A DNA stretch of 64,000 nucleotides, from sequence record NC_019406.1; one strand, written 5' to 3'. The notes beneath the pieces were generated by a model that was not told the DNA's origin, did not search any database, and saw nothing but the letters and a program-made list of their open reading frames with translations. Position numbers and translations under genes: made by a program. Below, piece by piece: positions 1-61,342 of the stretch. Position 1 is the first letter of the stretch. Every line of letters begins with the position of its first letter.

Positions 1-18
1 CACGATCCTCCAAAACAT

Positions 19-108: not shown

Positions 109-114
109 ATTTAT

Positions 115-202
115 CCCGGTGTGACGAAGTTTGGTAGACGTGCGAGTTTCAGATACTCGTGTCCGAGAGGGCGGGGAGGTTCGAATCCTCTCACCGGGAC
201 CA
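115..202 (+). tRNA. tRNA-Leu(CAG)
   Basis: CCCGGTG/CACCGGG, A73, CCA; loop TTCAGAT; long V-arm. Confidence 0.92.
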
Positions 203-209
203 AATTAAT

Positions 210-296
210 GCCCAACTGGTCGGAATGGCAGACGCAGGATACTCAAAATATCCGGACCGCAAGGTCGTCCCGGTTCAAGTCCGGGGTTGGGCACCA
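210..296 (+). tRNA. tRNA-Leu(CAA)
   Basis: GCCCAAC/GTTGGGC, A73, CCA; GGATA-CTCAAAA-TATCC. Confidence 0.93.
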
Positions 297-303
297 AGTT
301 TAA

Positions 304-391
304 CGCAGCGTGGCGGAGTCTGGTAGACGCGCCATCTTGAGAGGGTGGTGTCCGAAAGGGCGGGGAGGTTCGAATCCTCTCGCTGCGACCA
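304..391 (+). tRNA. tRNA-Leu(GAG)
   Basis: CGCAGCG/CGCTGCG, A73, CCA; loop TTGAGAG; long V-arm. Confidence 0.92.
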
Positions 392-399
392 AGTTCTGA

Positions 400-474
400 T
401 CTGGTGTAGTCGAGTGGTTAAGACGCCGCATTGTGGATGCGGAGGCTCTGGTTCAATCCCAGGCACCAGTACCA
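400..474 (+). tRNA. tRNA-His(GTG), no G-1, U72/A73
   Basis: CCGCA-TTGTGGA-TGCGG; 3' end CACCAGT-A-CCA; base -1 is A. Confidence 0.88.
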
Positions 475-478
475 ATAC

Positions 479-553
479 GGGGATGTAGCTCAGGGGTAGA
501 GCGGCTGTTTTGCAAGCAGCGGGTCGGGGGTTCGAATCCCTCCATCTCCACCA
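479..553 (+). tRNA. tRNA-Ala(TGC), canonical
   Basis: G3:U70 pair, TAGCTCAG D-arm, TGC anticodon, CCA. Confidence 0.95.
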
Positions 554-558
554 ACAAC

Positions 559-631
559 GGGGTATGCGCAGGGTCCGCAGGCATCCTTTGCAAGGAAGCT
601 GAGGTGGGTTCGAGTCCCACATACTCCACCA
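559..631 (+). tRNA. tRNA-Ala(TGC), atypical D-arm
   Basis: G3:U70, TGC loop, canonical T-loop and CCA; lacks U8 and normal D-loop. Confidence 0.7.
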
Positions 632-632
632 C

Positions 633-722
633 GGATGGTGAACCGGTCAGGCGCGCCGGGGCGGTTTCGAAAGCCGAGCGGACCTTCACGGGTTTGGGGA
701 TCATGCCCTCCGCCATCCGCCA
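633..722 (+). tRNA. (8/4) tRNA-Ser(CGA)
   Basis: 8-bp acceptor GGATGGTG/CGCCATCC, 4-bp T-stem GGGG/CCTC, G73, CCA, long V-arm. Confidence 0.8.
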
Positions 723-726
723 ACAT

Positions 727-816
727 GGAGAGCGAACCGGACAGCCGCGCCGGGACCGATTGGAAATCGCGTCGGACCTTCACGGGTCTGGGGATGGTGT
801 CCTCCGTTCTCCGCCA
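727..816 (+). tRNA. (8/4) tRNA-Ser(GGA)
   Basis: 8-bp acceptor GGAGAGCG/CGTTCTCC, 4-bp T-stem, loop TTGGAAA, G73, CCA. Confidence 0.8.
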
Positions 817-820
817 ACAA

Positions 821-908
821 GGATGTATGGCTGAGAGGCTGAAAGCGCCCGTCTTGAAAACGGGTCGACCGCAAGGTCGCGGGAGTTCGAATCTCTCTAC
901 ATCCGCCA
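821..908 (+). tRNA. tRNA-Ser(TGA), canonical
   Basis: GGATGTA/TACATCC, G73, CCA; CCCGT-CTTGAAA-ACGGG; long V-arm. Confidence 0.95.
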
Positions 909-979
909 AATGAGGGTCACGACCTCTCTCGCCTGTCGTGAGCAAATTCAGGGAGGATCGCCCTGGAGCCCGTGTAATT

Positions 980-1067
980 GGAGAACAAATCGGCCGGCGG
1001 CCGAGACCGATTGCTAATCGAGTCGGACCTTCACGGGTCTGGGGATGGTGCCCTCTGTTCTCCGCCA
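980..1067 (+). tRNA. (8/4) tRNA-Ser(GCT)
   Basis: 8-bp acceptor GGAGAACA/TGTTCTCC, 4-bp T-stem, loop TTGCTAA, G73, CCA. Confidence 0.8.
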
Positions 1068-1096
1068 TATTCAACCGCGAGCAAGGGAGCCGCAAC

Positions 1097-1318
1097 ATGA
1101 CGACGATGACGCAATGCCGACTGGAACGCAATGGCGCGGTCCAAGTCGCCTGGATCGAGTCGAAGTTCGCTAAGCCGACGAAGGTCGTCAAGATCAAGGT
1201 CGACGGCGAATGGGAAGACGGGTGGGTGGTCGCCAAGACCGGCACGACCCTACCGGCCGAAACGGTCCAGAAGCGCGAGCGGGACTTCAAGTCACACCGC
1301 CGCGCCACCGACGTGTAA
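1097..1318 (+). CDS. hypothetical protein (73 aa)
   Basis: ATG after AAGGGAG RBS; typical codon usage; followed by terminator. Confidence 0.7.
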   Translation: MTTMTQCRLERNGAVQVAWIESKFAKPTKVVKIKVDGEWEDGWVVAKTGTTLPAETVQKRERDFKSHRRATDV

Positions 1319-1321
1319 GGG

Positions 1322-1355
1322 AAACGCCCCGGTTGCGAGACCGGGGCGTTCTTTT
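1322..1355 (+). terminator. intrinsic terminator between convergent genes
   Basis: AACGCCCCGGT-TGCGAG-ACCGGGGCGTT then CTTTT. Confidence 0.85.
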
Positions 1356-1356
1356 G

Positions 1357-1809
1357 TTAGGCCGTCACGCCGTCAGTAGCGGCGATGACCAGCCATTGAG
1401 TACCGGTCCAGCGCAGGATCACCATCGTGGGCGGCGTAGGCACATGCGCGCCCACCACTCCGAGCGGATTGAATGGTAGGAAAGTCAATTCCTGGTACTG
1501 CTGCGCGTTCCATTGGAACGGCTTGCCCGGCGCCGTCTCCGCCAGATTGAGCGTTTCTGAAAGCGCTCGCAACTTGAACGTGGCTCGATTGGCGGTGTTC
1601 GTGCCAGATTCGAACTGAGACGGCAGCGGCAGTAGACGGACGACAATCTCGTCACCGGGCGATTCGCCCGGCGCGAGCCAGCCGTACAGCGTGACGTCGC
1701 TGTTATGCTCCAGGCGGATATCCACCTGACGCTCGTCGTTGCGGTTGATCACCGGGGCCACGGCGTAATTGGTCGCGGCCTGCGGAATTGAGATCAAGGT
1801 AGCAGACAT
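1357..1809 (-). CDS. hypothetical beta-rich protein (150 aa)
   Basis: ATG at 1809 after AAGGAA; the longer 364-aa ORF extension is antisense to the methyltransferase. Confidence 0.65.
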   Translation of the reverse strand: MSATLISIPQAATNYAVAPVINRNDERQVDIRLEHNSDVTLYGWLAPGESPGDEIVVRLLPLPSQFESGTNTANRATFKLRALSETLNLAETAPGKPFQWNAQQYQELTFLPFNPLGVVGAHVPTPPTMVILRWTGTQWLVIAATDGVTA

Positions 1810-1929
1810 ATGGTATTCCTTGGTTTGATGGAACCAGACAACGTCGTCCGGCTCAGCTTGTGTAGCGAACATAACCGGAACATGCAAGACCAGAATGGAC
1901 AGAAATTCTGGCGACGCTAAACTGCGCCC

Positions 1930-2565
1930 ATGACTTACCCGATCGCGCCGACCGCCTTTCCTGAGAACCCGTTCAACCCGGCATGGGTAGCTCGCGATTT
2001 CTTCTACTCCCAGGATGGGATTGGCGAGCATCCTGAACACGCTTGCAAGCGCACCTTCGAGAAGTCCGCGCCGTTCATCTCCGGCGTCCGCAACGCCATC
2101 GACATTGGCTGCCGTGACGGCGAATACAGCCGTTACTTGCAGACTCGGTTCACGCACGTTTATGGCTTCGATCCGCGCCGGCGCGAGTACCTGCCGTTCA
2201 ACGTCGATCTCGGGCGCATGACGCACTTCCTCTGTGCGCTGGGCGATGAGCCCGGTACGATCAAGATGTCTGGAGGTACGCACAATCCGCATGGCCGGAA
2301 GCAGCACTACGCCCCGTGCTTCACCCTCGACAGCTTCAATCTCCAGGATATCGACTACGTCAAGATCGACGTCGAAGGATTCGAGAAGAAGGTACTGATT
2401 GGCGGTTGGGTAACGATTGAGCGTTGCCGGCCGATGATCGTCATCGAGCAAAACGATGTCGTGCTACCGGGGGCCTCGCGCTACGAGGCGCGCGATTGGC
2501 TGGAGCAGCGGGGCTATAGCGTCGCCGCGATCAGCAAGGATGACCTGATCATGGTTCCGCAATAA
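1930..2565 (+). CDS. FkbM-family SAM-dependent methyltransferase
   Basis: IDIGCRDG SAM motif; YVKIDVEGFE...RPMIVIE signature. Confidence 0.85.
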   Translation: MTYPIAPTAFPENPFNPAWVARDFFYSQDGIGEHPEHACKRTFEKSAPFISGVRNAIDIGCRDGEYSRYLQTRFTHVYGFDPRRREYLPFNVDLGRMTHFLCALGDEPGTIKMSGGTHNPHGRKQHYAPCFTLDSFNLQDIDYVKIDVEGFEKKVLIGGWVTIERCRPMIVIEQNDVVLPGASRYEARDWLEQRGYSVAAISKDDLIMVPQ

Positions 2566-2578
2566 CGAGGAGACTTAC

Positions 2579-2809
2579 ATGACCGACGACCAAATCAAGC
2601 ACATGACCGACCGCTTTCTAGGCTGGAAGCTGCCGGCCAACTTCCAACCCGACGCCGGGATCAGCTTCCAGCCCGAGTACAATGTCGAGTTCATGGCGAG
2701 CCAGGGCAAGCCGCCCATGCGTCATGAGCCGGTCGGCACCAACCTGTTCAGCGCCGAGCAGGCCCAGGCGATGATCCGCCACATGCTGGAAGGCCTGCCG
2801 GCCTATTAA
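2579..2809 (+). CDS. hypothetical protein (76 aa)
   Basis: GAGGAG RBS; phage-like small ORF. Confidence 0.7.
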   Translation: MTDDQIKHMTDRFLGWKLPANFQPDAGISFQPEYNVEFMASQGKPPMRHEPVGTNLFSAEQAQAMIRHMLEGLPAY

Positions 2810-2814
2810 CAGTG

Positions 2815-2844
2815 TTGACAGGGCTGGCGCCACATGCCAGTAAT
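2815..2844 (+). promoter_or_regulatory. sigma70-like promoter
   Basis: TTGACA, 17-18 nt spacer, AGTAAT. Confidence 0.6.
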
Positions 2845-2850
2845 CCTGTC

Positions 2851-3060
2851 AGCCAATAGACCCCCTGACGGCGTTCGAGCGATGCGAAGCTCCCGGCATG
2901 CACCGGGCTCCCACAGCATCGTCCCGCCCTCCTGGGGATGCGGCTTCGAGCAGTTTCGTCTGGCCCATCTCACAAAAAGGTGCCCGACGGGGTTGGTGGA
3001 TCACCCGATGCGTACGCGCATCTGAAAACCACCACGAGTTCGCCGGTTCGCCGGCCTTAT
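2851..3060 (+). ncRNA. candidate structured RNA or long leader upstream of the tRNA-Asn-like gene
   Basis: No credible ORF; hairpins CCCGG/CCGGG, GATGCG-TACG-CGCATC, GCCGG-TTCG-CCGGC, GGTGG/CCACC. Confidence 0.5.
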
Positions 3061-3186
3061 ACGGGTGAAGCTCTAGGGTTGTCTCGGTGTAGCGCTGCAC
3101 CGGGCCTTAGGTGGGGAGCGCTTCCCATCATGGAGTGCCGGGTCGTTAACCCGGAGGCGGGGGTTCGAGTCCCTCCACCCGTTCCA
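3061..3186 (+). tRNA. tRNA-Asn(GTT)-like RNA with large D-loop insertion
   Basis: ACGGGTG/CACCCGT, U73, CCA; D-stem GCTC/GAGT; CCGGG-TCGTTAA-CCCGG; canonical T-arm; 126 nt. Confidence 0.75.
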
Positions 3187-3310
3187 ATCATAGGTGGGCC
3201 AGCGGAGAATTTCATCCGTTCGCTGGATCAAGAAAAGGGACGCCGGGGTCTTGCCGGCTACCGAGGGCGCGGCAACTGAACCGCCTACCCCACCGCCTCC
3301 CGGAGCTTCC

Positions 3311-4072
3311 ATGCGCATCCTGGTCTTGAGCGATCTGCACCTCGAATTTGGAGCCATGGATCGCAATTGGGAGCCGCCCGAATGCGACGCGGTGATCCTG
3401 GCCGGCGACATCGCCACCGGCGTCGTCGGCGTCATGTGGGCCAAGACGATTCGGGCTCCCGTCTTCTACGTGCCGGGCAACCACGAATTCTACGGCAAGC
3501 GGCGCTATCATCGCCACATGGAGAAGCTGCACGCCAAGGCGGAGGACTCCAATGTCGCCGTCATGCAGAACCGCATCATCCAGGGCGAGATCGCCGGCGA
3601 GAAGGTCCGTATCCTGGGCGCCACTATGTGGACCGACTTTGGGCTGCACGGGACCGAGCATCTTTCCCAGGTCGCCGCCCAGCGCGAGATGAACGACTAC
3701 AAGCAGATCAGGCTCGATCACAGCAAGATGCTGACGGCCGACGACACGCGCAGCCTGCATCTGGAATCTCGTTATTGGCTGAGCGAGCAACTGCGCCAGC
3801 CGTTCGACGGCAAGACGATCGTCATCACCCACCACGCCCCGTCGGAGCAGTCAATCCCTCCGCGTTATCGTGGCGATGCGCTGTCGCCGGCCTATGCCGC
3901 GCGCCTGGAGAACCTGATCTGCAACTACGAGCCCACGCTGTGGGTTCACGGGCACATTCACGACAGCCTGGACTACCGCATCTGCGGGACGCGCATCGTC
4001 TGCAACCCACGCGGCTATAAGGGCCACGAACTCAACAAGAACTTCGATCCGCATCTGGTGGTGGAGATTTAA
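3311..4072 (+). CDS. calcineurin-like metallophosphoesterase
   Basis: SDLH, AGD, GNHE, THH, HGHIH motifs; ATG at 3311 after GGAG. Confidence 0.9.
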   Translation: MRILVLSDLHLEFGAMDRNWEPPECDAVILAGDIATGVVGVMWAKTIRAPVFYVPGNHEFYGKRRYHRHMEKLHAKAEDSNVAVMQNRIIQGEIAGEKVRILGATMWTDFGLHGTEHLSQVAAQREMNDYKQIRLDHSKMLTADDTRSLHLESRYWLSEQLRQPFDGKTIVITHHAPSEQSIPPRYRGDALSPAYAARLENLICNYEPTLWVHGHIHDSLDYRICGTRIVCNPRGYKGHELNKNFDPHLVVEI

Positions 4073-4074
4073 CG

Positions 4075-4347
4075 ATGAAGGTATGGCGCGTGCTGGGCGG
4101 CGAGGTCAAAGACCTCCAGGCTCCTCAGCCCAAGACGGTCAACGAGTGCGTCGCGCTCTTTCGCGATCAGGCGACCGTTGAGTGGACGGGCGACTACGAG
4201 GATGCGAAGGCGGCCAAGGACGCCTGGAAGGCCCGCGCCCAGCAGACCGTAGACAACGCCCTCATGCGTTTCTTCATCATCGAGATGGACGTCGAGGTTA
4301 TGACGCCGCCGGAGTACGTCGCGCGCCTCCAGGAGCAGCACGCCTAA
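4075..4347 (+). CDS. hypothetical protein (90 aa)
   Basis: Operon-spaced ORF with typical codon usage. Confidence 0.7.
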   Translation: MKVWRVLGGEVKDLQAPQPKTVNECVALFRDQATVEWTGDYEDAKAAKDAWKARAQQTVDNALMRFFIIEMDVEVMTPPEYVARLQEQHA

Positions 4348-4868
4348 TGGCTTACCGCCAAATCATCCCCATCACCGATCCTCTCCTGAGCAAACCTTCC
4401 GTCCCGATCGAACTGATCGACGGTGAAGTACCGCAAGCGATCCTCGATCTCGCCGGCGACATGCTGGAGACCTGCCGGGCCATCAACGGCGCCGGGCTCG
4501 CCGCAGTCCAGGTGGGCGAGCCGGTCCGCATGTTCGTGATGGACCTCGCCCAGATCAACGGCCCGACCATGATCTTCATCAACCCCGAGATCATCTTGCG
4601 CTCGGGCGAGACGATCGAGATGCTTGAGGGTTGCCTGTCGATGCCCGGCATCGGATTCACCCTGGAACGCGCCGCGTCCGTAACGGTCCGCTATACCGCG
4701 ATCGACGGCGAGGAGAAGACCTACGACGCCGGCGGCTACGCGGCGATCTGCTGTCAGCATGAAATCGACCACCTGGACGGCGTTAGGCATATTGACCACT
4801 TGTCGAAGCTGAAGCGTTCGCGCTACATGTCCAAGTTCAAGAGCATGCTGAAAGCACGCTCTGGTTAA
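4347..4868 (+). CDS. def: peptide deformylase
   Basis: GAGLAAVQ, EGCLS and QHEIDHLDG motifs; start overlaps upstream stop (TAATG). Confidence 0.95.
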   Translation: MAYRQIIPITDPLLSKPSVPIELIDGEVPQAILDLAGDMLETCRAINGAGLAAVQVGEPVRMFVMDLAQINGPTMIFINPEIILRSGETIEMLEGCLSMPGIGFTLERAASVTVRYTAIDGEEKTYDAGGYAAICCQHEIDHLDGVRHIDHLSKLKRSRYMSKFKSMLKARSG

Positions 4869-4892
4869 TTTAACTCTCTGCCTGGAGTCCAC

Positions 4893-6092
4893 ATGTCCCA
4901 CTTCGCCCTCGTGGTCGTGACGACCACCAACTCGAAAGATCAACTCAAAGAGGTGCTTCAGCCCTTCCACGAGTTCGAGTGTACCGGCATCAGCGATCAA
5001 TATGTTGTCGAGGTCGATGACACCGACGAGAAGCGCGCGTCGTACGAGACCGCGAAACGTCGCCGTTACCGTTCGCCGGACGGAGCCCTGCACGATCCGT
5101 ACGACAACATCTACTTCCGCGATCTCACGGCTGATGAACTCAAGCAGGCCGGTACCGAGAAATTCGCCCGCATCCCAGGCCTGTTCATCCACGACCAGGA
5201 CTGGAATGACGGGCGTGGATATCGCTCGAAGGTTCACTTCGTGCCGACGGGCTGGGAAGATGTCGAAGTTCCCGTCAAGGAGTTCTCCTCGCTCCGCGAC
5301 TACATCGCCGACGAAACGGATCGCAAGGTCATCGTTCAAGGCGGGCTGCCTGACTACGACGATCAGCACAAGCATGGTTACACGATCGTCGACGCCAAGG
5401 GTGAGGTCGTGAAGACGGTGCGTCGCACCAACCCGAACGCCAAGTGGGATTGGTGGGAGATCGGCGGTCGGTATCGCGGGCGTCTTCTGTCCAAGGGCGT
5501 CTTCGGTTACCAAGGTCGGCCGGGCACCTTCAATAACGACACCTACCACCAGGGCGGCAGCGACGGCCTGCTCAAGGGCGAGATCGACTTCGAGCGCATG
5601 CGCAGGCTGAACGTCGAGAAGCACCTGGGTTTGGTGGAGGAGGCGTACGCCAAGATGGGCGACGTGTCCCGCGAAGAAGTCAAGGCGCTCTGCATCGAAT
5701 ACGCTGACCTTTTCAACAAGGTCATGCGGCCGAAGTTCGCCGCGATCGACGCCGGCACCTGGAAGGACGGCAACGTCTGGGAAAAGGCGAACGCCGAAAG
5801 TCCGCGCTTCGAGGAACTCGGCAAGCTCCTCGACCCCTTCTACGACTACTTCAACGGCGCCGGCTTCGATCGTGACATCGGCGATCCCTGGGCCTGGGCG
5901 GAGGCCATCCCGCCGCTGACCGCTTACGCCTACCTGGGTACCGATGGTGTCTGGCGCGCCTCGGGCGAGATGGGCTGGTTTGGCATTTCGTCCAAGGAAA
6001 AGGACTCGGGCGAATGGAATCGCGAGTTCGCCAAGGCCCTCGCTGCCGTGCCGGATCACCACATGATCTGGGTGGTCGACTGCCACATCTGA
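4893..6092 (+). CDS. conserved hypothetical phage protein (399 aa)
   Basis: GGAG RBS; NPNAKWDWW and GEMGWFG motifs seen in phage hypotheticals. Confidence 0.8.
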   Translation: MSHFALVVVTTTNSKDQLKEVLQPFHEFECTGISDQYVVEVDDTDEKRASYETAKRRRYRSPDGALHDPYDNIYFRDLTADELKQAGTEKFARIPGLFIHDQDWNDGRGYRSKVHFVPTGWEDVEVPVKEFSSLRDYIADETDRKVIVQGGLPDYDDQHKHGYTIVDAKGEVVKTVRRTNPNAKWDWWEIGGRYRGRLLSKGVFGYQGRPGTFNNDTYHQGGSDGLLKGEIDFERMRRLNVEKHLGLVEEAYAKMGDVSREEVKALCIEYADLFNKVMRPKFAAIDAGTWKDGNVWEKANAESPRFEELGKLLDPFYDYFNGAGFDRDIGDPWAWAEAIPPLTAYAYLGTDGVWRASGEMGWFGISSKEKDSGEWNREFAKALAAVPDHHMIWVVDCHI

Positions 6093-6111
6093 AAAAAGTT
6101 TGCCGGAATAG

Positions 6112-6140
6112 TTGACACGTTTCGGCAAGTGTGAGACACA
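6112..6140 (+). promoter_or_regulatory. promoter of tRNA operon 2
   Basis: TTGACA at 6112; weak -10; predicted start coincides with leader ATG at 6148. Confidence 0.55.
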
Positions 6141-6147
6141 CAATCCC

Positions 6148-6243
6148 ATGATGACCTATCGCAACAACGTGCGCCAAATTCGAGTTCGCCAGTTTAACTT
6201 GGCGGGCCGTTCGCACGTGGGCGATGGAGGCAGCGAGGGTTAA
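6148..6243 (+). CDS. leader peptide MMTYRNNVRQIRVRQFNLAGRSHVGDGGSEG
   Basis: Leaderless ORF 36 nt from the -35 start; codons 4-17 only Y,R,N,V,Q,I,F. Confidence 0.75.
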   Translation: MMTYRNNVRQIRVRQFNLAGRSHVGDGGSEG

Positions 6244-6311
6244 GCCCTCAGGCACCATCAAACAGATCGAGCGAAGGCCCGCCAGGAACCCCTGGCGGGC
6301 CTTTTCTTTTT
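6169..6311 (+). promoter_or_regulatory. transcription attenuator (1:2, 2:3 antiterminator, 3:4 terminator)
   Basis: Terminator AAGGCCCGCCAGG-AACC-CCTGGCGGGCCTT plus U-tract (6274-6311); 6198-6214 pairs with 6271-6286 (16 bp, one bulge); CGCCAA/CGCCAG can sequester TTGGCG. Confidence 0.8.
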
Positions 6312-6364
6312 CCACTTTCCGATCCGAGGAGATCGTCATGAACAACGGCGGGTAACCGCCTTCT

Positions 6365-6450
6365 GGGTAGGCATCGGGCACGAGTGAGCCCAACCGACTG
6401 TAAATCGGCCGCGAAAGCTGTGAGGGTGCGAATTCCCTCCCTGCCCTCCA
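6365..6450 (+). tRNA. tRNA-Tyr(GTA), atypical T-loop, U73
   Basis: GGGTAGG/CCTGCCC, CCA; loop CTGTAAA; V-arm; T-loop TGCGAATT. Confidence 0.75.
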
Positions 6451-6451
6451 T

Positions 6452-6526
6452 CCCCATGTAGCTGAGACAGAGTAGCGCCAGAGTGAAATCCTGGAGACGG
6501 AGGTGCGAGCACTCTCGTGGGGGCCA
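6452..6526 (+). tRNA. tRNA-Phe(GAA), atypical
   Basis: CCCCATG/CGTGGGG, CCA; loop GTGAAAT; imperfect T-arm. Confidence 0.7.
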
Positions 6527-6534
6527 TTTTCAGT

Positions 6535-6609
6535 GGCAGGTTAGTTCAGAGGTAGAACGCCGCTATGACATGGCGGATGTCGGGGGTTCAATTCCCTCAC
6601 CTGCTACCA
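6535..6609 (+). tRNA. tRNA-Val(GAC)
   Basis: Cloverleaf, loop ATGACAT, A73, CCA. Confidence 0.88.
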
Positions 6610-6610
6610 T

Positions 6611-6686
6611 CCTAGTGTAGCTCAGTTGGTAGAGCAGCGGATCGATAATCCGCCGGTCGCCGGTTCGATCCCGGCCGCTAGGTCCA
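6611..6686 (+). tRNA. tRNA-Ile(GAT), U73
   Basis: GCGGA-TCGATAA-TCCGC; canonical D/T arms; CCA. Confidence 0.92.
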
Positions 6687-6694
6687 GTTTCTGA

Positions 6695-6770
6695 TGGGGC
6701 ATAGCTCAGGGGTTAGAGCGCGCGCTTGATAAGCGTGAGGCCGTTGGTTCGAGACCAACTGTCCCTACCA
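6695..6770 (+). tRNA. tRNA-Ile(GAT), second copy
   Basis: CGCGC-TTGATAA-GCGTG; A73, CCA; 1:72 mismatch. Confidence 0.9.
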
Positions 6771-6804
6771 AACAAAGGCCGGCGCGGAGATGCGCGCCGC
6801 CTAA

Positions 6805-6880
6805 CGCGAACGGGCCAGATGGGACGGCAGGGGTGTCACATACCTCGATTGACTGTGTTCGATTCACAGGTTCGCGACCA
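6805..6880 (+). tRNA. tRNA-Val(CAC), atypical
   Basis: CGCGAAC/GTTCGCG, A73, CCA; loop GTCACAT. Confidence 0.8.
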
Positions 6881-6887
6881 AGTTTCT

Positions 6888-6961
6888 TGGGGGATCGTCT
6901 AATGGTAGGACGGTAGAGTCTGGTTCTACAGATATAGGTTCGAGTCCTATTCCCCCATCCA
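6888..6961 (+). tRNA. tRNA-Gln(CTG)
   Basis: GTAGA-GTCTGGT-TCTAC; U73, CCA. Confidence 0.88.
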
Positions 6962-6967
6962 AGTTGT

Positions 6968-7041
6968 TCTCGGGTGGTCTAATGGTAGGACATCTGGTTT
7001 TGGTCCAGAGGGTTGGGGTTCGATTCCTTGGCCGAGAGCCA
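6968..7041 (+). tRNA. tRNA-Gln(TTG)
   Basis: TCTGG-TTTTGGT-CCAGA; G73, CCA. Confidence 0.9.
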
Positions 7042-7053
7042 ACTTGTTCTTGA

Positions 7054-7142
7054 TCTCATGTGGCGGAACTGGTAAACGCACCGGACTGTTAATCCGGCGT
7101 CTCGCAAGAGACTTGGGGGTTCGAAGCCCTCCGTGAGAGCCA
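7054..7142 (+). tRNA. tRNA-Asn(GTT) with long class II variable arm
   Basis: TCTCATG/CGTGAGA, G73, CCA; CCGGA-CTGTTAA-TCCGG; V-arm GTCTC-GCAA-GAGAC. Confidence 0.85.
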
Positions 7143-7171
7143 ATATGTCGCAGCTTCGGCTGCGGCGAAAT

Positions 7172-7255
7172 GCCCTGGTAACCCGGCGCGCACTACGAAT
7201 GCGCGAGCCGTAGCTGGAGTTGAAAAGGCTGGTTCGAATCCAGCCCAGGGCGCCA
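7172..7255 (+). tRNA. D-armless tRNA-Arg(ACG)-like RNA
   Basis: GCCCTGG/CCAGGGC, G73, CCA; GCGCA-CTACGAA-TGCGC; canonical T-arm; only about 9 nt at the D position. Confidence 0.7.
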
Positions 7256-7259
7256 ACAT

Positions 7260-7337
7260 AGCGATGTAGCTCAGTGGATTTAGAGCGTTCCCCTACGAAG
7301 GGAAGGGTCGGGGGTTCGAGTCCCTCCATCGCTGCCA
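7260..7337 (+). tRNA. tRNA-Arg(ACG), canonical
   Basis: Cloverleaf, TTCCC-CTACGAA-GGGAA, CCA. Confidence 0.93.
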
Positions 7338-7343
7338 ACCTCA

Positions 7344-7425
7344 GCGTACAGGCCGAGCAGGATTATCGTCAGGCGCCGCCCTCCGAAGGCGGAGAGGCCC
7401 GGTTCGAGTCCGGGGTACGCTGCCA
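7344..7425 (+). tRNA. tRNA-Arg(CCG), enlarged D-loop
   Basis: AGCGTAC/GTACGCT, CCA; CCGCC-CTCCGAA-GGCGG. Confidence 0.85.
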
Positions 7426-7436
7426 GACATTGAGAG

Positions 7437-7465
7437 TTGACAGGCATTTTTAGGCAGCCTATATC
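7437..7465 (+). promoter_or_regulatory. sigma70-like promoter
   Basis: TTGACA-17 nt-TATATC. Confidence 0.7.
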
Positions 7466-7472
7466 CTCTCAA

Positions 7473-7511
7473 GTGAATTCCAAGCCCGCACCGGGATCGC
7501 TCAGGCGATAA
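7473..7511 (+). CDS. possible 12-aa leaderless peptide (MNSKPAPGSLRR)
   Basis: GTG 36 nt from the -35 start, same geometry as the 6148 leader; followed by a terminator. Confidence 0.4.
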   Translation: MNSKPAPGSLRR

Positions 7512-7542
7512 GGCGGGCCTGGGCCTCCTGATCGTCAAGCAG

Positions 7543-7580
7543 AGCCCCCGCGTGGTCCCGGTCCGCGCGGGGGCTTTGTG
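7543..7580 (+). terminator. intrinsic terminator-like hairpin
   Basis: AGCCCCCGCG...CGCGGGGGCT then TTGTG (weak U-tract). Confidence 0.6.
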
Positions 7581-7626
7581 ATTCGGGCTTATCCTGAGTC
7601 AAGGTATTTATAGTTGACAGACAAGT

Positions 7627-7665
7627 GCCAGGAATCTTGACTCTCCAGGTCGATTCTACTACCGT
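7627..7665 (+). promoter_or_regulatory. GCCAGGAATCTTGAC-type promoter
   Basis: Recurrent 15-mer containing the -35 TTGAC; TACCGT at 17 nt. Confidence 0.6.
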
Positions 7666-7708
7666 GCGCTGCATCAACAACGCGTAGCTACCGTCGGGGA
7701 CGAAGGCT

Positions 7709-7873
7709 GTGTCGGATAACGACAAGGGCCAAACGGTGACCCCCGAGGCCCAAGCTGAAAACCAGGGACAGCAGCGTTTCTACGCGCTGCTTAACGAACT
7801 TCGGGCAGCACTGCGCCGTCCGTCGACGGAGGCTCATACACCCAACCTGGATGTCGAGACCGATCATGGCTAA
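7709..7873 (+). CDS. small hypothetical protein (54 aa)
   Basis: GTG after GAAGG; overlaps next gene start; not in ORF track. Confidence 0.45.
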   Translation: MSDNDKGQTVTPEAQAENQGQQRFYALLNELRAALRRPSTEAHTPNLDVETDHG

Positions 7874-8345
7874 CCAACCGAATGGAGCAGCGCAGGCCGA
7901 TCGCGTGCGGGAGATCGAGATGCGTCTTTGGGAAGAGGTGGGCACCCAACTCAAGGGTGTCACGGAAGCTATGAAGGAACTCGCGCTCGAAATGCGCGAT
8001 GTTCGTGAACGCCTCATTCGTATCGAGGCCCAGGATCAGCCCAAGAAGCTGGCGAGCCTGGAAGAAGACCTGCGCGAGACGCAAGACGAGATTGCGCGCG
8101 TCGAAAAGGACGCAGCGGACGATCTGGCCCGCGCCACGGCGGTCCATCATCAGGAAATCGGCCTGATCAAGTCCCAGGCCACGGCCGACATTGCCCGCGT
8201 CGAGAAGACTGCGGCCGACGACAAGCTTGCGCTCGAAAAGCGCCTTACCCGCATGGAGATGATCATCGCGCCGCTGACCTGCGCCGGCGGCGCCCTGCTG
8301 GCGACGATCATCACGATCTTGGTTCAGAAGTTCACGGGAAGCTAA
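7866..8345 (+). CDS. coiled-coil protein with C-terminal membrane anchor
   Basis: Heptad-rich body; hydrophobic C-terminus; ATG after GGA/GAG-rich RBS. Confidence 0.75.
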   Translation: MANQPNGAAQADRVREIEMRLWEEVGTQLKGVTEAMKELALEMRDVRERLIRIEAQDQPKKLASLEEDLRETQDEIARVEKDAADDLARATAVHHQEIGLIKSQATADIARVEKTAADDKLALEKRLTRMEMIIAPLTCAGGALLATIITILVQKFTGS

Positions 8346-8454
8346 ACTACCTGCGGTCGTTTGCCGCAGCAGCTTCACAATAGGAAGTAGCTTGTGGCTT
8401 CACCAGGGCAAGGGTAGCTTAAACGCTATACCAACGCGCCCTCGGAGGGGACAC

Positions 8455-8691
8455 ATGATTAGCGCCGCTGCCGTTCTGGAATTTCAGGACGACCAAGAAC
8501 AAGAAACGGCGCACACCGCCGACGACTACCAAACGAATCTGATCCGACTGAGTTCCGAGTTTTTCTCACTCATTCAGGACGATGTGACGGAAGAGGGTAA
8601 GCGCCGCCTGGGCGATCTCCACCGAGCGATCGGGGTCGATCTCCAAAAATTCCGTAAGGCTTCCGTCATGGAGGGTCTTGCGGCCATCTAG
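8455..8691 (+). CDS. hypothetical protein (78 aa)
   Basis: GGAGGGG RBS before ATG 8455. Confidence 0.65.
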   Translation: MISAAAVLEFQDDQEQETAHTADDYQTNLIRLSSEFFSLIQDDVTEEGKRRLGDLHRAIGVDLQKFRKASVMEGLAAI

Positions 8692-8717
8692 TTCCTTACG
8701 CCGCAAGGGAGCGACGT

Positions 8718-9542
8718 TTGTCCGAAGCTTTTGAGTCTCACTCGTTCGACGATTCCACGTTCGAGCGTCCTCCCACCAAGTCTAAGGCGCAGGCGCGCGC
8801 TGAACGCCGCGCCGAACGAGCGTCAAAGCAGGCGGAGCATCGCGCTCCGCCGCTGGTGCCCAAGACTGAGAACCAGCGCGAGTACATCGAAATTCTCCGC
8901 GACGCCAATAGCTGCATCGCGCTCGGCCCCGCCGGCACCGGCAAGACCTATATCGCCGCCCGCATCGCGGCGCAGCGCAAGATGGCGGGCCATGTCGACA
9001 AGATCATCATCACTCGCGTGAACGTCTCCAAGCGCGAGCACGCCCTGGGCTTTCTGCCGGGCAACATCGACGCCAAGATGAAGCCCTGGATGACTCCGGT
9101 TGTCGAAGGCCTGCGTGCCGAGGTGTCGGCCAAGGTCATGGACACCTGGAAGGCCGCCGGCGAGTTCGAGATCGTGCCCTTCGAGTTCATGCGCGGGCGC
9201 ACCTTCGACAACGCCTTCGTGATCCTCGACGAGGCTCAGAACGCGTCGTTCGACGACCTGGAACTGTTCGTGACCCGTACCGGTCAGGGTTCGCAAGTCG
9301 TGATCTGCGGCGATCCCGGCCAGATCGACATCCCGAACTCCGGGCTGGAGATCATCACCGACATCGCCGAGGAAAACGGAATCGTCGACACGATCGAGTT
9401 CACCGAGGAAGACGTCGTTCGCTCGGCCGAGGCGAAGGCCTGGGTCAAGGGCATCGCGAAGTACAAGCGCGCCAAGGCTGCGGCCGGTGGCGATGCACGG
9501 AATCTTGACGGTGTCAACCGTTTCATCCATTCTGGGAATTAA
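8718..9542 (+). CDS. phoH: PhoH-like ATPase
   Basis: GPAGTGKT Walker A; FMRGRTF; ILDEAQN; GDPGQID. Confidence 0.95.
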   Translation: MSEAFESHSFDDSTFERPPTKSKAQARAERRAERASKQAEHRAPPLVPKTENQREYIEILRDANSCIALGPAGTGKTYIAARIAAQRKMAGHVDKIIITRVNVSKREHALGFLPGNIDAKMKPWMTPVVEGLRAEVSAKVMDTWKAAGEFEIVPFEFMRGRTFDNAFVILDEAQNASFDDLELFVTRTGQGSQVVICGDPGQIDIPNSGLEIITDIAEENGIVDTIEFTEEDVVRSAEAKAWVKGIAKYKRAKAAAGGDARNLDGVNRFIHSGN

Positions 9543-9571
9543 GGAGTCACGTTTCGGAGGAAACGTGACTC
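9543..9571. repeat. inverted repeat GAGTCACGTTTC-GGAG-GAAACGTGACTC
   Basis: Perfect 12-bp arms; motif recurs near 13497, 30979, 54000, 62541. Confidence 0.75.
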
Positions 9572-9592
9572 AGTCATAGGGTAGAACGGTCG

Positions 9593-10114
9593 ATGGCGTT
9601 TCAATTTGTGGTCGAGACGGGTGAGGGTGATCCCGACGCCAACTCCTACTGCACGGTGGAGTTCGCCGACGACTATTCGGAGATGAACATCCAGCGTTCC
9701 TCGGAGTGGCTCGCTCTGGAGGAAGAGGACAAGCAGCGCATCTTGGCGCGCGCGTCCAAGACGCTGGATGTCCGCTTCAAGTGGAACGGCACGCGCGTCG
9801 ATGGGGACTCCGGTCTGAAGTGGCCACGTGCCGGCGTCTACGACGAGGACGGCTTCATCATCGCTGACGATGTCATCCCCGGCATCCTTCAGGAAGCGAC
9901 CGCCGAGTTCGCCCTGTATCTGATGTCGGATGACTGGACCGCGCCGCGCGACGAAGACCAGTTCAAGGAACTGAAGGTCGACGTGATCGACATCAAGTTC
10001 GACACCACCTATCGCCGCTCCTACATCCCGCCGACGATCGTGGCGATGCTGGAGGGCCTGGGCTCCTCTAACTCGGGCAATCGCCCGGCCTTCAAGAAGA
10101 TCGTCCGGTCGTAA
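9593..10114 (+). CDS. head-tail adaptor (DnaT-like family)
   Basis: ETGEG..DANSY N-terminus, LKWPR motif; first gene of neck module. Confidence 0.75.
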   Translation: MAFQFVVETGEGDPDANSYCTVEFADDYSEMNIQRSSEWLALEEEDKQRILARASKTLDVRFKWNGTRVDGDSGLKWPRAGVYDEDGFIIADDVIPGILQEATAEFALYLMSDDWTAPRDEDQFKELKVDVIDIKFDTTYRRSYIPPTIVAMLEGLGSSNSGNRPAFKKIVRS

Positions 10115-10117
10115 TCC

Positions 10118-10492
10118 ATGGGCCTGAAGAACACGCTCCGTAAGGGGGTCAAGAAGGCGTTCGAGGCGCTCGACGACATCCCCAAGAAGGTCACGTATCA
10201 GAGCGTGTCCGGCGCGCCGGTGCGTGATCTGGATGCGGGGACTTTCACGCGGCCGTCGACCAACTACACGCTGCCTATGGTCGTGTTCACCAGCTTCACC
10301 ACGCGTGAACGGGACAAGGACCCAGCGATCGAGACGAACGACGTCAAGGTGCTCTTCCCCAGCATGGACCTGCCGGTGAAGGCCAAGACGCAGGACACCA
10401 TCATCGACGATGAAGGCGTGCTCTGGGAAGTGATCGACAAGAAGACGGACCCCGCTTCGGTCGTGACCATTCTCCAGATGCGTGCGGCCTAA
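10118..10492 (+). CDS. head closure / stopper protein
   Basis: Size and synteny between adaptor and neck protein. Confidence 0.6.
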   Translation: MGLKNTLRKGVKKAFEALDDIPKKVTYQSVSGAPVRDLDAGTFTRPSTNYTLPMVVFTSFTTRERDKDPAIETNDVKVLFPSMDLPVKAKTQDTIIDDEGVLWEVIDKKTDPASVVTILQMRAA

Positions 10493-10493
10493 C

Positions 10494-10991
10494 GTGGCGT
10501 ACAAGCGCAGCGGGAGCAAGCTCGCTGTTCAAGTCGACAACCCATTCTCTCACGCGTTCGAGCGTTTCTTCGAACAGGCCCAGGATAGCTTCGAGCGCCG
10601 CGAGAACGCGCTGCTGATCAAGCTGAACGAGAAGATTCTAGAGAATACGCCGGTCTGGGAAGGCGACACGATCCTCAATTGGCGGTGGTCGACCCGCGCG
10701 CCGGACATGAGTCACGAAGAGCCGCGCGGAGCCGGCATTGATCCCGGCCCGACGAATTCGATGCCGATCGGGTCTGAACCGCGTCGTAAGGCCAACGAGG
10801 CGCGCCCACGTCGTTCGCTGGCCGGCGCCCTGCGCGCCAAGAAGCCGGTCGACATCTACCTGACCAACACGTCGGACAGCGCCGTCGCCCTGGAGTACGG
10901 GCTGCTGCCCACGCCCCAGCGGTCACGCGTCGACAGTTCAAAGGGGATTGTCCGTCTGGCGATCGCCGAAGCTATGGCAGGTGTCCTGTGA
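10494..10991 (+). CDS. neck / tail completion protein (HK97 gp10-like)
   Basis: TPVWEG...NW and IYLTN...ALEYG motifs; synteny. Confidence 0.65.
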   Translation: MAYKRSGSKLAVQVDNPFSHAFERFFEQAQDSFERRENALLIKLNEKILENTPVWEGDTILNWRWSTRAPDMSHEEPRGAGIDPGPTNSMPIGSEPRRKANEARPRRSLAGALRAKKPVDIYLTNTSDSAVALEYGLLPTPQRSRVDSSKGIVRLAIAEAMAGVL

Positions 10992-11058
10992 TCTGGTTCG
11001 CCGCCTTCCACATCTTGCCCTGGCTGCCGTTCTGGTGGCTCTCTGAGGAGACCTGACC

Positions 11059-11514
11059 GTGTCGATCTTTAACGCCCTCCGTCGTGTCCTGGACACGAAG
11101 GCGCTGGCGGCGGCCACGGAAGCAGGCCTCGCCGGCAAGATTCAGTTGATGAACGAAGAGACCGTCAAGGACAAGCGTGCGGTTCACGCCGAGTTCTGGT
11201 TCCGCACCGGCGGTTCCAAGCAGTGCGAGCTTGGCCCGAATACGTCCCTTGAAATGACCGTGGGCATCTTCCAGTTCACCGTCTACTCACCCGAAAACGT
11301 GGGCAGCGGAAGCGGGACTGCGGCGGCCGATATTCTGCGCGCGCGGTTTAACCGCAAGCAATGGATGGTGGACCCCTACGGCTACGTCAACACCCAGGTC
11401 GCCAACGTCAAGACCCCGATGAGTGGTCCGGTGAACGGCCAGTTCGTGACGATCGTCGACGGCACCTTCTACTACTACCACCGCGATCCCGACGCTGGGG
11501 ACTTCCGGGAATAA
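11059..11514 (+). CDS. tail terminator protein
   Basis: GIFQFTVYSP..GSG motif; directly upstream of tail tube. Confidence 0.65.
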   Translation: MSIFNALRRVLDTKALAAATEAGLAGKIQLMNEETVKDKRAVHAEFWFRTGGSKQCELGPNTSLEMTVGIFQFTVYSPENVGSGSGTAAADILRARFNRKQWMVDPYGYVNTQVANVKTPMSGPVNGQFVTIVDGTFYYYHRDPDAGDFRE

Positions 11515-11545
11515 CGCTTGACGTCAGCTTGACTGGCTGCTATCT

Positions 11546-11584
11546 GCCAGGATTCTTGACACTCTCAGGCTTTTCGAGTAGGGT
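11546..11584 (+). promoter_or_regulatory. GCCAGGATTCTTGAC-type promoter of tail tube gene
   Basis: TTGACA-17 nt-TAGGGT with upstream GCCAGGATTC. Confidence 0.65.
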
Positions 11585-11655
11585 CCACCACATCGGCGCG
11601 CAGACCGGGGCGGTCGCCAGCCAACCCCCTGTTTTGCAACTTTTGGTGGGCAGAA

Positions 11656-61330: not shown

Positions 61331-61342
61331 GAAAGGTGACTC

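Follow-up and report, generated by a model that had tools for sequence, protein, structure and literature searches.

In attenuation of the trp, his and ilv operons, a ribosome that stalls on control codons frees segment 2 of the leader transcript, which allows read-through. The enterobacterial trp, his, leu, thr, pheA and ilv attenuators share a short ORF rich in control codons and the same four segments. These pair as 1:2, as the 2:3 antiterminator or as the 3:4 intrinsic terminator, and a stall on segment 1 frees segment 2. The regulated genes encode biosynthetic enzymes and the leaders use long runs of control codons; the multivalent ilvGMEDA and thr leaders cover two to three amino acids. 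In the pheST attenuator of E. coli (pheM leader), a component of the translation machinery is placed under leader-peptide feedback on aminoacyl-tRNA supply. T-box riboswitches, which typically control synthetase and amino-acid genes, are likewise leader RNAs that report the state of a specific tRNA through the choice between terminator and antiterminator. They bind the uncharged tRNA directly by means of a specifier codon and the T-box sequence, with one tRNA per element and without a ribosome or an ORF. The ribosome-dependent mechanism also operates in alphaproteobacteria, as is known from trpL (rnTrpL/peTrpL) of Sinorhizobium meliloti. This attenuator responds to a single amino acid, governs a biosynthetic operon and yields a leader RNA and a peptide that are active in trans.

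The locus described here lies in Caulobacter phage CcrColossus, in the 64 kb stretch of record JX100810 that was analysed (the window; window position = record position − 62000). All coordinates below are window positions, and all features are on the + strand. The leader in front of the Tyr/Phe/Val/Ile/Gln/Asn/Arg tRNA block (6112-6311, leader B) is very likely a ribosome-mediated, trp-type transcription attenuator that would control a phage tRNA operon by sampling the codons of the operon's own tRNAs. It has the short ORF and the four segments of the enterobacterial attenuators. In contrast to these, it precedes tRNA genes, its mRNA is leaderless, and it addresses seven amino acids (sister leaders six to eight), mostly with one to four codons each. 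With pheST it shares the feedback on aminoacyl-tRNA supply through a leader peptide; there, however, a synthetase is controlled, one amino acid is sensed and the sensed tRNA is not a product of the operon. It differs from a T-box in being built around a conserved ORF, and from the S. meliloti trpL in the number of amino acids sensed.

Every structural element named in the original prediction (promoter, leaderless 31-codon ORF, terminator and tRNAs) was recovered at the coordinates given there. The −35 hexamer of the leader promoter, TTGACA (6112-6117), is kept in relatives. The leader ATG lies 36 nt after the start of this hexamer, which matches the spacing expected of a leaderless mRNA. In 13/13 relatives examined, TTGAC(A/C/G) is found exactly 36 nt 5' of the leader ATG (37 in CcrSC). 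The putative −10 region, GACACA (6135-6140, with TGTGA just before), is placed by a 17-nt spacer. It is poor in CcrColossus and weak in the relative PW, which counts against the attenuator reading; in relatives the site reads TAGGGT, TAGTTT, TAAAAG, TATAAG or TAAACG, i.e. TAnnnn. Because of this weak −10 element, a generic sigma-70 scan missed the promoter, and the call is based on the conserved −35 hexamer and its conserved spacing to the ATG.

The leader ORF (6148-6243; 31 codons and a stop, MMTYRNNVRQIRVRQFNLAGRSHVGDGGSEG) begins at the predicted transcription start and has no Shine-Dalgarno sequence ahead of it. In every relative the ATG coincides with the predicted 5' end, the reading frame is intact in the 12 aligned relatives, both indels are multiples of 3, and synonymous changes are present; this lends indirect support to translation of the leader. 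As is typical of attenuators, the regulated genes are separated from their promoter by a short ORF with an excess of the sensed codons. Its stop codon UAA (6241-6243) forms the triloop of a small hairpin (6235-6249, −7.7 kcal/mol) that is seen again in folds of the relatives' leaders. The stop codon lies well 3' of segment 2, so that a ribosome terminating there would leave segment 2 uncovered, unlike in trp. From a reading of the sequences, the stop-codon hairpin also recurs in the ORFs of leader A, the leader of another tRNA cluster of these phages (see below).

The control codons 4-17 (6157-6198) encode Y R N N V R Q I R V R Q F N, identical to the earlier listing, and contain all seven amino acids of the downstream tRNAs and no others. 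In the six-frame translation of the window (127,996 residues), no other run within {Y,F,V,I,Q,N,R} reaches these 14 residues; the runner-up has 9 and consists largely of poly-Arg. Given the amino-acid frequencies of the phage itself, such a run has a probability of 0.335^14 = 2e-7; the naive estimate made before was about 4e-7. The match between leader and tRNAs in the window is real and well beyond chance. Several of the control codons are minority codons in the long ORFs of the phage, namely TTT (0.10 of synonymous use), CGA (0.14), GTT (0.16) and ATT (0.17). Sampling at the codon level is incomplete, which counts against the attenuator reading: the CcrColossus leader contains no CGG codon for Arg-CCG, as had been noted, and the leader of the phiCbK group lacks AGA/AGG codons for Arg-UCU/CCU.

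The operon behind the leader (6367-7425) encodes tRNAs for Tyr, Phe, Val-GAC, Ile, Ile, Val-CAC, Gln-CUG, Gln-UUG, Asn, Arg-ACG (with a long variable arm), Arg-ACG and Arg-CCG. They were identified by ARAGORN, relaxed thresholds, Rfam and comparison. With default settings ARAGORN reports nine (Val-GAC, two Ile, Val-CAC, Gln-CUG, Gln-UUG, Asn and two Arg-ACG). The Tyr-GUA (6367-6446) and Phe-GAA (6452-6526) genes are detected only with relaxed thresholds; the former is 87% identical to its counterpart in phage Lacusarx, and the tRNA-Phe scores 30.8 bits against Rfam. The Arg-CCG gene (approximately 7343-7425) is a pseudo-tRNA in GenBank. The predicted count of 12 tRNAs therefore stands, but 4/12 are non-canonical or low-scoring, and the non-canonical character of these four is a point against the attenuator reading. 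No separate tRNA promoter is apparent past 6311: from 6312 to 7430 the + strand has a single TTGAC, which is located inside a tRNA-Val (6849). A terminator (7544-7574; GenBank annotation and terminator scan) closes the operon. Up to this point the genes downstream of the leader are tRNAs only, without the biosynthesis or aminoacylation gene that is classically expected behind an attenuator.

The leader RNA can form three mutually exclusive helices in the arrangement of the trp attenuator. Segment 1 (6156-6192), the 5' strand of the anti-antiterminator, lies beneath the control codons and pairs with segment 2 (6198-6227) in a 1:2 hairpin (6156-6227, −33.3 kcal/mol), so that segment 1 can indeed sequester segment 2. 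This overlap of an anti-antiterminator with control codons is an attenuator hallmark. The core of segment 2 (6198-6214, CUUGGCGGGCCGUUCGC) has segment 3 (6271-6286) as its alternative partner. The resulting 2:3 duplex has the foreseen 16 bp with one bulge (−30.5 kcal/mol), and RNA that stops short of segment 4 folds into it. Segment 3 is at the same time the 5' arm of the intrinsic terminator (6273-6311), so that antiterminator and terminator exclude each other, as known attenuators require. The 3:4 stem (6273-6304; 14 bp, 10 of them G-C, −29.6 kcal/mol) is trailed by TCTTTTT, is annotated in GenBank and is the best terminator-like site within the first 12 kb of the window. Again as in attenuators, it separates the leader ORF from the genes under control. 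The full leader folds as 1:2 plus 3:4 (−81.3 kcal/mol, z = −6.1). The terminator is followed by a conserved motif, GATC..GGAGATC, and in some of the phages also by a mini-ORF.

From these elements the following mechanism can be proposed. Host RNA polymerase would begin the transcript with the A of the start codon (6148), and the leaderless 5' end would be bound by a 70S ribosome. When the seven aminoacyl-tRNAs are plentiful, the translating ribosome would pass codons 4-17 and be located on or beyond segment 2 as segments 3 and 4 emerge. With segment 2 masked or passed, the 3:4 terminator (6273-6304 and the U-run) would form and the transcript would stop ahead of the tRNAs. When translation is absent, the 1:2 hairpin would form first, which would likewise lead to termination. 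A shortage of any one of the tRNAs for Tyr, Arg, Asn, Val, Gln or Ile (perhaps Phe) would stall the ribosome on segment 1; segment 2 would then be free to pair with segment 3, no terminator would form and transcription would read through into the 12 tRNA genes. The fresh tRNAs would relieve the stall. This negative feedback would supply tRNAs on demand, with an OR logic over seven amino acids. The natural trigger may be anticodon nucleases, host shut-off or plain demand.

The central step, in which stalling on the control codons frees segment 2, stands in a mask model for most of these codons. A ribosome whose A site is at codons 2-14 would still permit the 2:3 helix (12-16 bp), whereas one at codons 16-25 would block it. 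When the ribosome is treated as a simple footprint, stalls at the last two or three control codons (15-17: Gln, the sole Phe codon and Asn) would hide part of segment 2 instead of freeing it, a point against the attenuator reading. Likewise, at equilibrium a ribosome-free RNA that ends before segment 4 is predicted to favor 2:3 over 1:2. This also speaks against the reading, and termination by default would depend on the kinetic order of folding.

Conservation was examined in 12 aligned relatives and in two others with the same or a near-identical ORF; all of them share the spacing of promoter and ATG, an unbroken frame and the three helices, with compensatory changes. The truncated RNA forms the 2:3 helix in 12/12 aligned relatives, and the full-length RNA forms 1:2 and the terminator in 11/12, CcrSC folding differently. 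Across the 12 phages, 97.7% of the cells of the 2:3 core are paired, with 3 covarying pairs; 4/500 shuffles were as good, and slid controls reached at most 55%. Compensatory changes are also found in 1:2 (the upper stem being conserved) and in 3:4, and in the alignment one site of CcrSC is altered in step across segments 2, 3 and 4. In PW, two mismatches weaken 2:3, which weighs against the attenuator reading. A scan of IMG/VR with the segment-2/segment-3 pattern returned 56 loci, of which 7 have a leader-like ORF and downstream tRNAs. These correspond to the sequenced phages CcrBL10, CcrRogue, CcrBL9, CcrSC, CcrColossus, Karma and CcrPW, and the pattern scan revealed no new environmental relatives.

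Equivalent leaders precede other tRNA clusters. Leader A, in front of the Pro/Thr/Lys/Leu/His/Ala/Ser cluster of the same phages, has 35/38 to 41/44 residues within the set of its cluster (P from 1e-8 to 1e-13), and leaders of different clusters within one phage match their own cluster only. In Bertelyvirus (RB23, CcrSC, BL9) the tRNA-Trp has been relocated to cluster A; there, and in no other leader A, the leader contains a Trp codon. In Sphingobium phage Lacusarx and Erythrobacter phage L02 the tRNAs are grouped differently, as {K,G,D,E,R,F}, {S,Y,L,T,H,Q,C,W} and {P,M,V,I,A,N}, and the leaders RFGKRDRREGERGF, TQTTLLTQCHYWQLLSSSSL and NVIAMNNPAPAIMVPVAMA match these groupings of their own. 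Upstream of cluster 1 of Lacusarx no convincing leader was found. The TTGAC-to-ATG geometry of leader B is also present ahead of leader 3 in both Lacusarx and L02. In T5, an unrelated tRNA-rich phage taken as negative control, the small ORFs of the tRNA region do not match the neighboring tRNAs. The expectation that leader composition would track tRNA content in relatives and at other clusters was thus borne out, and the comparative sequence evidence can be regarded as decisive for the link between leader and tRNAs.

Two further ORFs were seen near tRNA genes of these phages. One, a conserved candidate (leader C, MTYLMSLYEREARLGRDTTAA and homologues), precedes the Glu/Asp tRNAs; since its amino-acid composition does not stand out statistically, it is not claimed. 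An ORF of approximately 90 amino acids that precedes the Trp-Gly-Gly tRNAs is not claimed as a leader either.

The same device might have another read-out (Rho loading, RNA processing or RNA stability), or it might respond to another signal, i.e. general amino-acid starvation or translation capacity; this alternative is unlikely. No canonical U-tract terminator follows leader A of CcrColossus or leader 3 of Lacusarx, although both leaders match their tRNAs. This counts against the attenuator reading and means that the read-out may differ between leaders. The conserved motif and mini-ORF past the terminator of leader B would also suit a different read-out. Leader B itself, in contrast, has a complete set of terminator, antiterminator and anti-antiterminator, all of them strong and with covariation. 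As to the signal, an attenuator-type device cannot separate a shortage of tRNA from amino-acid starvation, since a ribosomal sensor reads aminoacyl-tRNA and is blind to the cause; this too is a point against the attenuator reading. The sensed codons are, however, tied to the controlled tRNA genes, which makes regulatory sense only if tRNA supply is the variable that is corrected. It may be added that leader A has a more complex set of putative attenuator helices.

Alternatively, the leader ORF could encode a functional micro-protein whose likeness to the tRNA set is incidental. The peptide is recognizably homologous across phages (T-Y-R..V.QI.V....GRS), and leader peptides that act in trans do exist, such as peTrpL of Sinorhizobium. 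The pattern of change in the leader makes this explanation highly improbable. All seven amino acids occur in every leader B examined, with Phe, Asn, Arg, Gln and Val swapping positions. Substitutions in the control region are physico-chemically radical (N/F, R/V, F/N, N/I), yet all but one stay within the set, the exception being a Ser in BL9, which counts against the attenuator reading. The pattern points to selection on leader composition rather than on sequence and supports the attenuator reading. The conserved AGRS stretch coincides with segment 2 of the RNA switch. Leaders that are not related to one another, both in these phages and in distant ones, each fit the differing tRNA set of their cluster, down to the rare Cys, His, Trp, Tyr and Met, and the Trp codon of leader A accompanies the arrival of tRNA-Trp in its cluster.

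It can hardly be credited that the hairpin 6273-6304 merely terminates the upstream block gp100-gp105, with a chance ORF as spacer and the tRNAs transcribed by read-through or from another start: gp105 ends at 6092, 20 nt before the promoter, without a terminator of its own (so that the hairpin must stop upstream transcription too), GenBank annotates only a terminator at the site and the −10 element of CcrColossus is weak, but the ORF, its frame, the fixed 36-nt distance to the ATG and the seven-amino-acid composition are kept across genera with differing upstream genes, the in-set run is unique within the window, the antiterminator and anti-antiterminator helices covary, and equivalent leaders stand before other tRNA clusters.

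The ribosome-mediated attenuator, in which the leader ORF would be translated and stalling would decide on read-through, has no counterpart among the Rfam leader, riboswitch and T-box families (cmscan of window 1-12000, E up to 1). Rfam matches to ctRNA and Hrs10 on the terminator hairpin are sub-threshold (22-28 bits, against gathering scores of 45-108) and were set aside as chance. The literature searched, a collection that lacks most subscription-journal papers, contained no earlier description of tRNA genes under such leader control or, in agreement with the original prediction, of an attenuator that samples its own tRNA products. If true, this would be, to our knowledge, the first time that leader-peptide attenuation is seen to govern tRNA genes and that an attenuator is seen to sample the RNAs made by its own operon. 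Attenuation would then extend beyond metabolic operons to RNA genes, would cover six to eight sensed amino acids instead of one to three, and would include leaderless mRNAs. Such leaders would also offer natural multi-input parts for the simultaneous reporting of many aminoacyl-tRNAs.

The presence of tRNA genes in phages is usually explained by codon-usage matching and, lately, by the replacement of host tRNAs destroyed by defence nucleases. We know of essentially nothing on how the expression of these genes is regulated. If the attenuator reading is true, phages measure tRNA sufficiency through the speed of translation on the codons served by the operon, and correct it. The hypothetical proteins phiCbK gp083, Swift gp079, RB23 gp135, CcrSC gp144 and Kabachok_04190 would then be leader peptides. 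Leader composition could also predict unannotated, non-canonical tRNAs, for example those for Tyr and Thr, which were reported absent in the original genome paper (PMC3556154). For the CbK-like phages of alphaproteobacteria (Caulobacter, Brevundimonas, Sphingobium, Erythrobacter) it seems reasonably likely that each tRNA operon is a closed loop with its own multi-input ribosomal sensor. Each sensor would sample six to eight specificities and switch its operon on when any of them becomes limiting, e.g. after host shut-off or an attack by anticodon nucleases. When and why phages need their own tRNAs would thereby become directly testable in a non-pathogenic model, Caulobacter crescentus with phiCbK.

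The region 6112-6311 of Caulobacter phage CcrColossus (JX100810; record positions minus 62000 give window positions) is best supported as a trp-type ribosome-mediated attenuator, in which the regulated genes are tRNAs and the control codons are those served by the same tRNAs. The promoter, leaderless ORF and terminator of the original prediction were all found in place. The -35 hexamer TTGACA occupies 6112-6117, and the ATG of the leader ORF (leader B, 6148-6243, encoding MMTYRNNVRQIRVRQFNLAGRSHVGDGGSEG before the stop) is located 36 nt past the start of this hexamer, i.e. at the expected transcription start, without a Shine-Dalgarno sequence. The terminator hairpin (6273-6304; 14 bp, G+C-rich, followed by a U-run) was detected by a scan and is annotated in GenBank; it is the top terminator-like site within the first 12 kb of the window. 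The upstream gene gp105 has no terminator of its own, and transcription arriving from there would run into the same hairpin. A separate tRNA promoter beyond 6311, named in the prediction as an objection, was also looked for and not found: the sole TTGAC on the + strand of 6312-7430 lies inside tRNA-Val.

The control codons (codons 4-17; control region YRNNVRQIRVRQFN) exclusively specify Tyr, Arg, Asn, Val, Gln, Ile and Phe (set B), and each of the seven is used. No longer in-set run than this one of 14 residues occurs when the 64 kb window is translated in all six frames (127,996 residues); the runner-up reaches 9 residues and is mainly poly-Arg. The chance of such a run is 2e-7 with the phage's own amino-acid frequencies, in line with the non-random composition claimed earlier. 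The control codons include minority codons, namely TTT, CGA, GTT and ATT (0.10, 0.14, 0.16 and 0.17 of synonymous use in the long ORFs of the phage). A plain terminator adjoining a chance ORF can, in practice, be excluded.

Downstream, the predicted count of 12 tRNAs is correct, with four of these genes being non-canonical. Nine are detected by ARAGORN at default settings (Val-GAC, two Ile, Val-CAC, Gln-CUG, Gln-UUG, Asn and two Arg-ACG). Tyr-GUA (6367-6446) is only detected at relaxed thresholds and shows 87% identity to the corresponding gene of the Sphingobium phage Lacusarx, Phe-GAA (6452-6526) is detected at relaxed thresholds and lies above the Rfam tRNA threshold, and Arg-CCG (about 7343-7425) was found as well. 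Long variable arms are normally confined to Leu, Ser and Tyr tRNAs; here they appear to be present in Lys (90 nt, 19-108), Asn (89 nt, 7054-7142) and one Arg-ACG (about 84-97 nt, 7159-7255). The Tyr and Phe tRNAs that open the operon (6367-6526) have low scores and apparently UGCGA instead of UUCGA T-loops, and are absent from the GenBank annotation. According to the original genome paper, these phages contain no Tyr or Thr tRNA (PMC3556154). Directly 3' of the last tRNA (7437-7574), a promoter rated good (TTGACA-N17-TATATC) is followed by ~100 nt with a possible 12-codon ORF and an annotated terminator, beyond which a further TTGACA occurs at 7614. The region 7437-7574 may specify a small RNA or act as a further leader, serving gp106 onward.

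The transcript 6148-6312 is predicted to fold at -81.3 kcal/mol (z = -6.1 versus shuffles) into three elements: a long hairpin pairing 6156-6192, which contains the control codons, to 6199-6227 (1:2, the anti-antiterminator), a small hairpin (6235-6249) with the stop codon as its three-base loop, and the terminator (3:4). When the RNA is cut at 6290, i.e. without the terminator 3' arm, the predicted fold instead pairs 6198-6214 with 6271-6286 (2:3, the antiterminator) in a helix of 16 bp with one bulge. Both proposed partners of segment 2, the terminator 5' arm and the control-codon segment that sequesters it, are thereby recovered. The helix energies are alike (1:2, -33.3; 2:3 duplex, -30.5; 3:4, -29.6 kcal/mol). 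The ribosome-free equilibrium slightly favors 2:3, so that default termination would rely on 1:2 folding first. Classical attenuators likewise depend on this order.

The ribosome was modelled as a block from -15 nt to +14 nt of the first base of the A-site codon. An A site within codons 2-14 leaves the 2:3 helix possible (12-16 bp), and a stall across most of the control region would therefore free the antiterminator. An A site within codons 16-25 blocks 2:3; an advanced ribosome would thus cover segment 2 while the terminator is made. A stall at Gln15, Phe16 or Asn17 would cover segment 2 in part.

The same element precedes the same tRNA cluster in CcrPW, the phiCbK group (Swift, Magneto, phiCbK, Ccr10), Rogue, BL10, Bertelyvirus (RB23, CcrSC, BL9) and the Brevundimonas phages Kikimora, Bajun, Kabachok and Bambus. 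These relatives keep TTGAC(A/C/G) 36 nt ahead of the ATG (37 nt in CcrSC); a 17-nt spacer, a -10 element of the form TAnnnn and 7 nt come next, and the intervening sequences have diverged. The start codon is ATG in all relatives examined, as expected for leaderless initiation, and the ORF alignment contains two indels of 3 nt each. The 2:3 helix appears in the predicted truncated RNA of 12/12 aligned relatives, and 1:2 plus terminator in the predicted full-length RNA of 11/12 (CcrSC folds otherwise). Compensatory changes were found in the upper 1:2 stem and the terminator (RNAalifold). In the 2:3 core, 97.7% of cells are paired and three pairs are altered on both sides; only 4/500 shuffles match this pairing, which falls to ≤55% once the partner is shifted by one to three columns. 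PW is the weakest 2:3 case (two mismatches). In CcrSC, the alignment reveals a coordinated change of one position across segments 2 (G to A), 3 (C to U) and 4 (G to A), which fits alternate pairing of segment 3 with 2 and 4.

All seven set-B amino acids are present in the control region of Colossus and in those of PW (YRNNVQQIRVRQFN), Kikimora (YRQNVQNIRVVRFY), Bajun (YRQNVQNIRVVRFN), Kabachok (YRNNVQQIQVVRFN), the phiCbK group (YRQFVRQIQVVRNI), Rogue and BL10 (YRQFVQIQVVRNF) and RB23 (YRQFVRQIQFVRVN). Phe and Asn exchange positions between lineages, radical replacements (N/F, R/V, F/N, N/I) remain within the set, and the sole out-of-set residue found is a Ser in BL9. In these regions, selection acts on the composition of leader B rather than on its sequence, a pattern that a functional micropeptide does not explain. 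The conserved A/T-G-R-S following the control region coincides with segment 2, so that its conservation is at the RNA level.

The composition also tracks the tRNA content, as the original prediction had asked. The operon is preceded by cluster A (Pro, Thr, Lys, Leu, His, Ala, Ser; tail at 19-1067), which has its own promoter and leader ORF: MTFSTHKPSTLKPATGAASLAHASLLTPATSKPSLSRSL in Colossus (4265-4384 of stretch L004, just upstream of the window; record 61264-61383), MFALSHNSLSTKAASPASLSLALLATATKPSTKPTTSASHSTDHL in Swift (gp079) and GTG-initiated versions in the Brevundimonas phages. Leader A covers the whole of set A with 33/38 to 41/44 in-set residues (P from 1e-8 to 1e-13) and almost no set-B residues; leader B avoids set A. 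The Colossus version has codons for nearly every cluster anticodon, among them the rare TTG for Leu-CAA. The three Bertelyvirus genomes have tRNA-Trp relocated to the end of cluster A, and their leader A (MTRIHTTLTTAKPASTGALTLASWPASSKPLLRHSAVLA) carries a Trp codon seen in no other leader A. Lacusarx, of a different genus, groups its tRNAs differently: the ORF preceding Lys, Lys, Gly, Asp, Glu, Glu, Gly, Arg, Phe ends in RFGKRDRREGERGF, and the leaderless MFTQTTLLTQCHYWQLLSSSSL, which shares the 36-nt promoter geometry, precedes Ser, Tyr, Leu, Leu, Thr, His, Gln, Ser, Cys, Trp with 20/21 residues in set and all eight amino acids covered. Erythrobacter phage vB_EliS-L02 has a matched leader for each of three clusters: MFNVIAMNNPAPAIMVPVAMA... 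for Pro, Met, Val, Ile, Ala, Asn, MTFGRTKRDRREGDERGFTS for Lys, Gly, Asp, Glu, Arg, Phe, and MFTQTALHLLTQTTLCWQCQYSSLSPF for Ser, Tyr, Leu, Thr, His, Gln, Cys, Trp. In a leader-by-cluster matrix, enrichment and full coverage occur on the diagonal only, for all Lacusarx and L02 leaders as for leaders A and B. In the T5 control, small ORFs across the tRNA region do not match the neighboring tRNAs. The 42-aa ORF T5.070 (14628-14756 of the T5 stretch L076), which lies directly 5' of tRNA-Cys, contains six Cys in CxxC pairs and resembles a zinc-ribbon micro-protein more than it does a leader.

A conserved 20-21-codon ORF directly before tRNA-Glu and tRNA-Asp (MTYLMSLYEREARLGRDTTAA; L004 2958-3023; homologues in stretches L006, L007, L010, L012-L015) is a possible third leader. 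Its Glu and Asp codons are conserved and, from a reading of the sequence, a small terminator-like hairpin has the stop codon in its loop; in the matrix, the composition of this ORF does not stand out statistically. Short G+C-rich hairpins with the stop codon in their loop recur in leaders A (stretches L003, L006, L010, L011, L012; from reading of the sequences) and B (6235-6249) and in a mini-ORF 3' of the leader B terminator. There (6321-6360), the GATCCGAGGAGATC motif, a small hairpin with a GGAG Shine-Dalgarno sequence that is conserved in PW, BL10, Rogue, Swift and Kabachok, is followed by ATG AAC AAC GGC GGG TAA (MNNGG, 6338-6355), with its stop in GGCGG-GTAA-CCGCC. PW, BL10 and Rogue also carry the mini-ORF; Kikimora has MTGGD plus stop, Kabachok and Bambus have an ATG at this position, and the phiCbK group has none. 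The stop-codon hairpin could be a polymerase pause or ribosome-release feature.

The element shares every defining structural feature of leader-peptide attenuators, the nearest analogues being the multivalent ilv and thr leaders and pheM-pheST. Classical examples control amino-acid biosynthesis and the pheST synthetase operon, and a tRNA operon falls outside this scope. No Rfam leader family or T-box matched in an Rfam search. Attenuated tRNA operons or leaders sampling their own products were not found in the full-text literature covered, which makes the element a variant of leader-peptide attenuation without an earlier description there; most subscription journals lie outside this coverage and an older report is possible.

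Downstream of leader A, the Colossus RNA has several rival hairpins and no clear U-tract. Another read-out (through Rho or processing) or another signal (amino-acid starvation) is improbable, if more plausible for sister leaders without a U-tract. For attenuation by a translating ribosome, we infer that the leader is translated and that a natural trigger stalls ribosomes on it. Termination at 6311 would follow from fast translation, or from none. When a ribosome slows at any sampled codon, 2:3 would be able to form and the polymerase to enter the operon, an OR logic across seven amino acids. As the tRNA products of the operon would relieve the stall, the circuit would amount to a negative feedback on tRNA supply.

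Between the two tRNA operons (3311-4868), metallophosphoesterase and peptide deformylase genes are followed by a PhoH-like gene, an order that is syntenic across the Dolichocephalovirinae phages examined, so that the region reads as a translation-support module.
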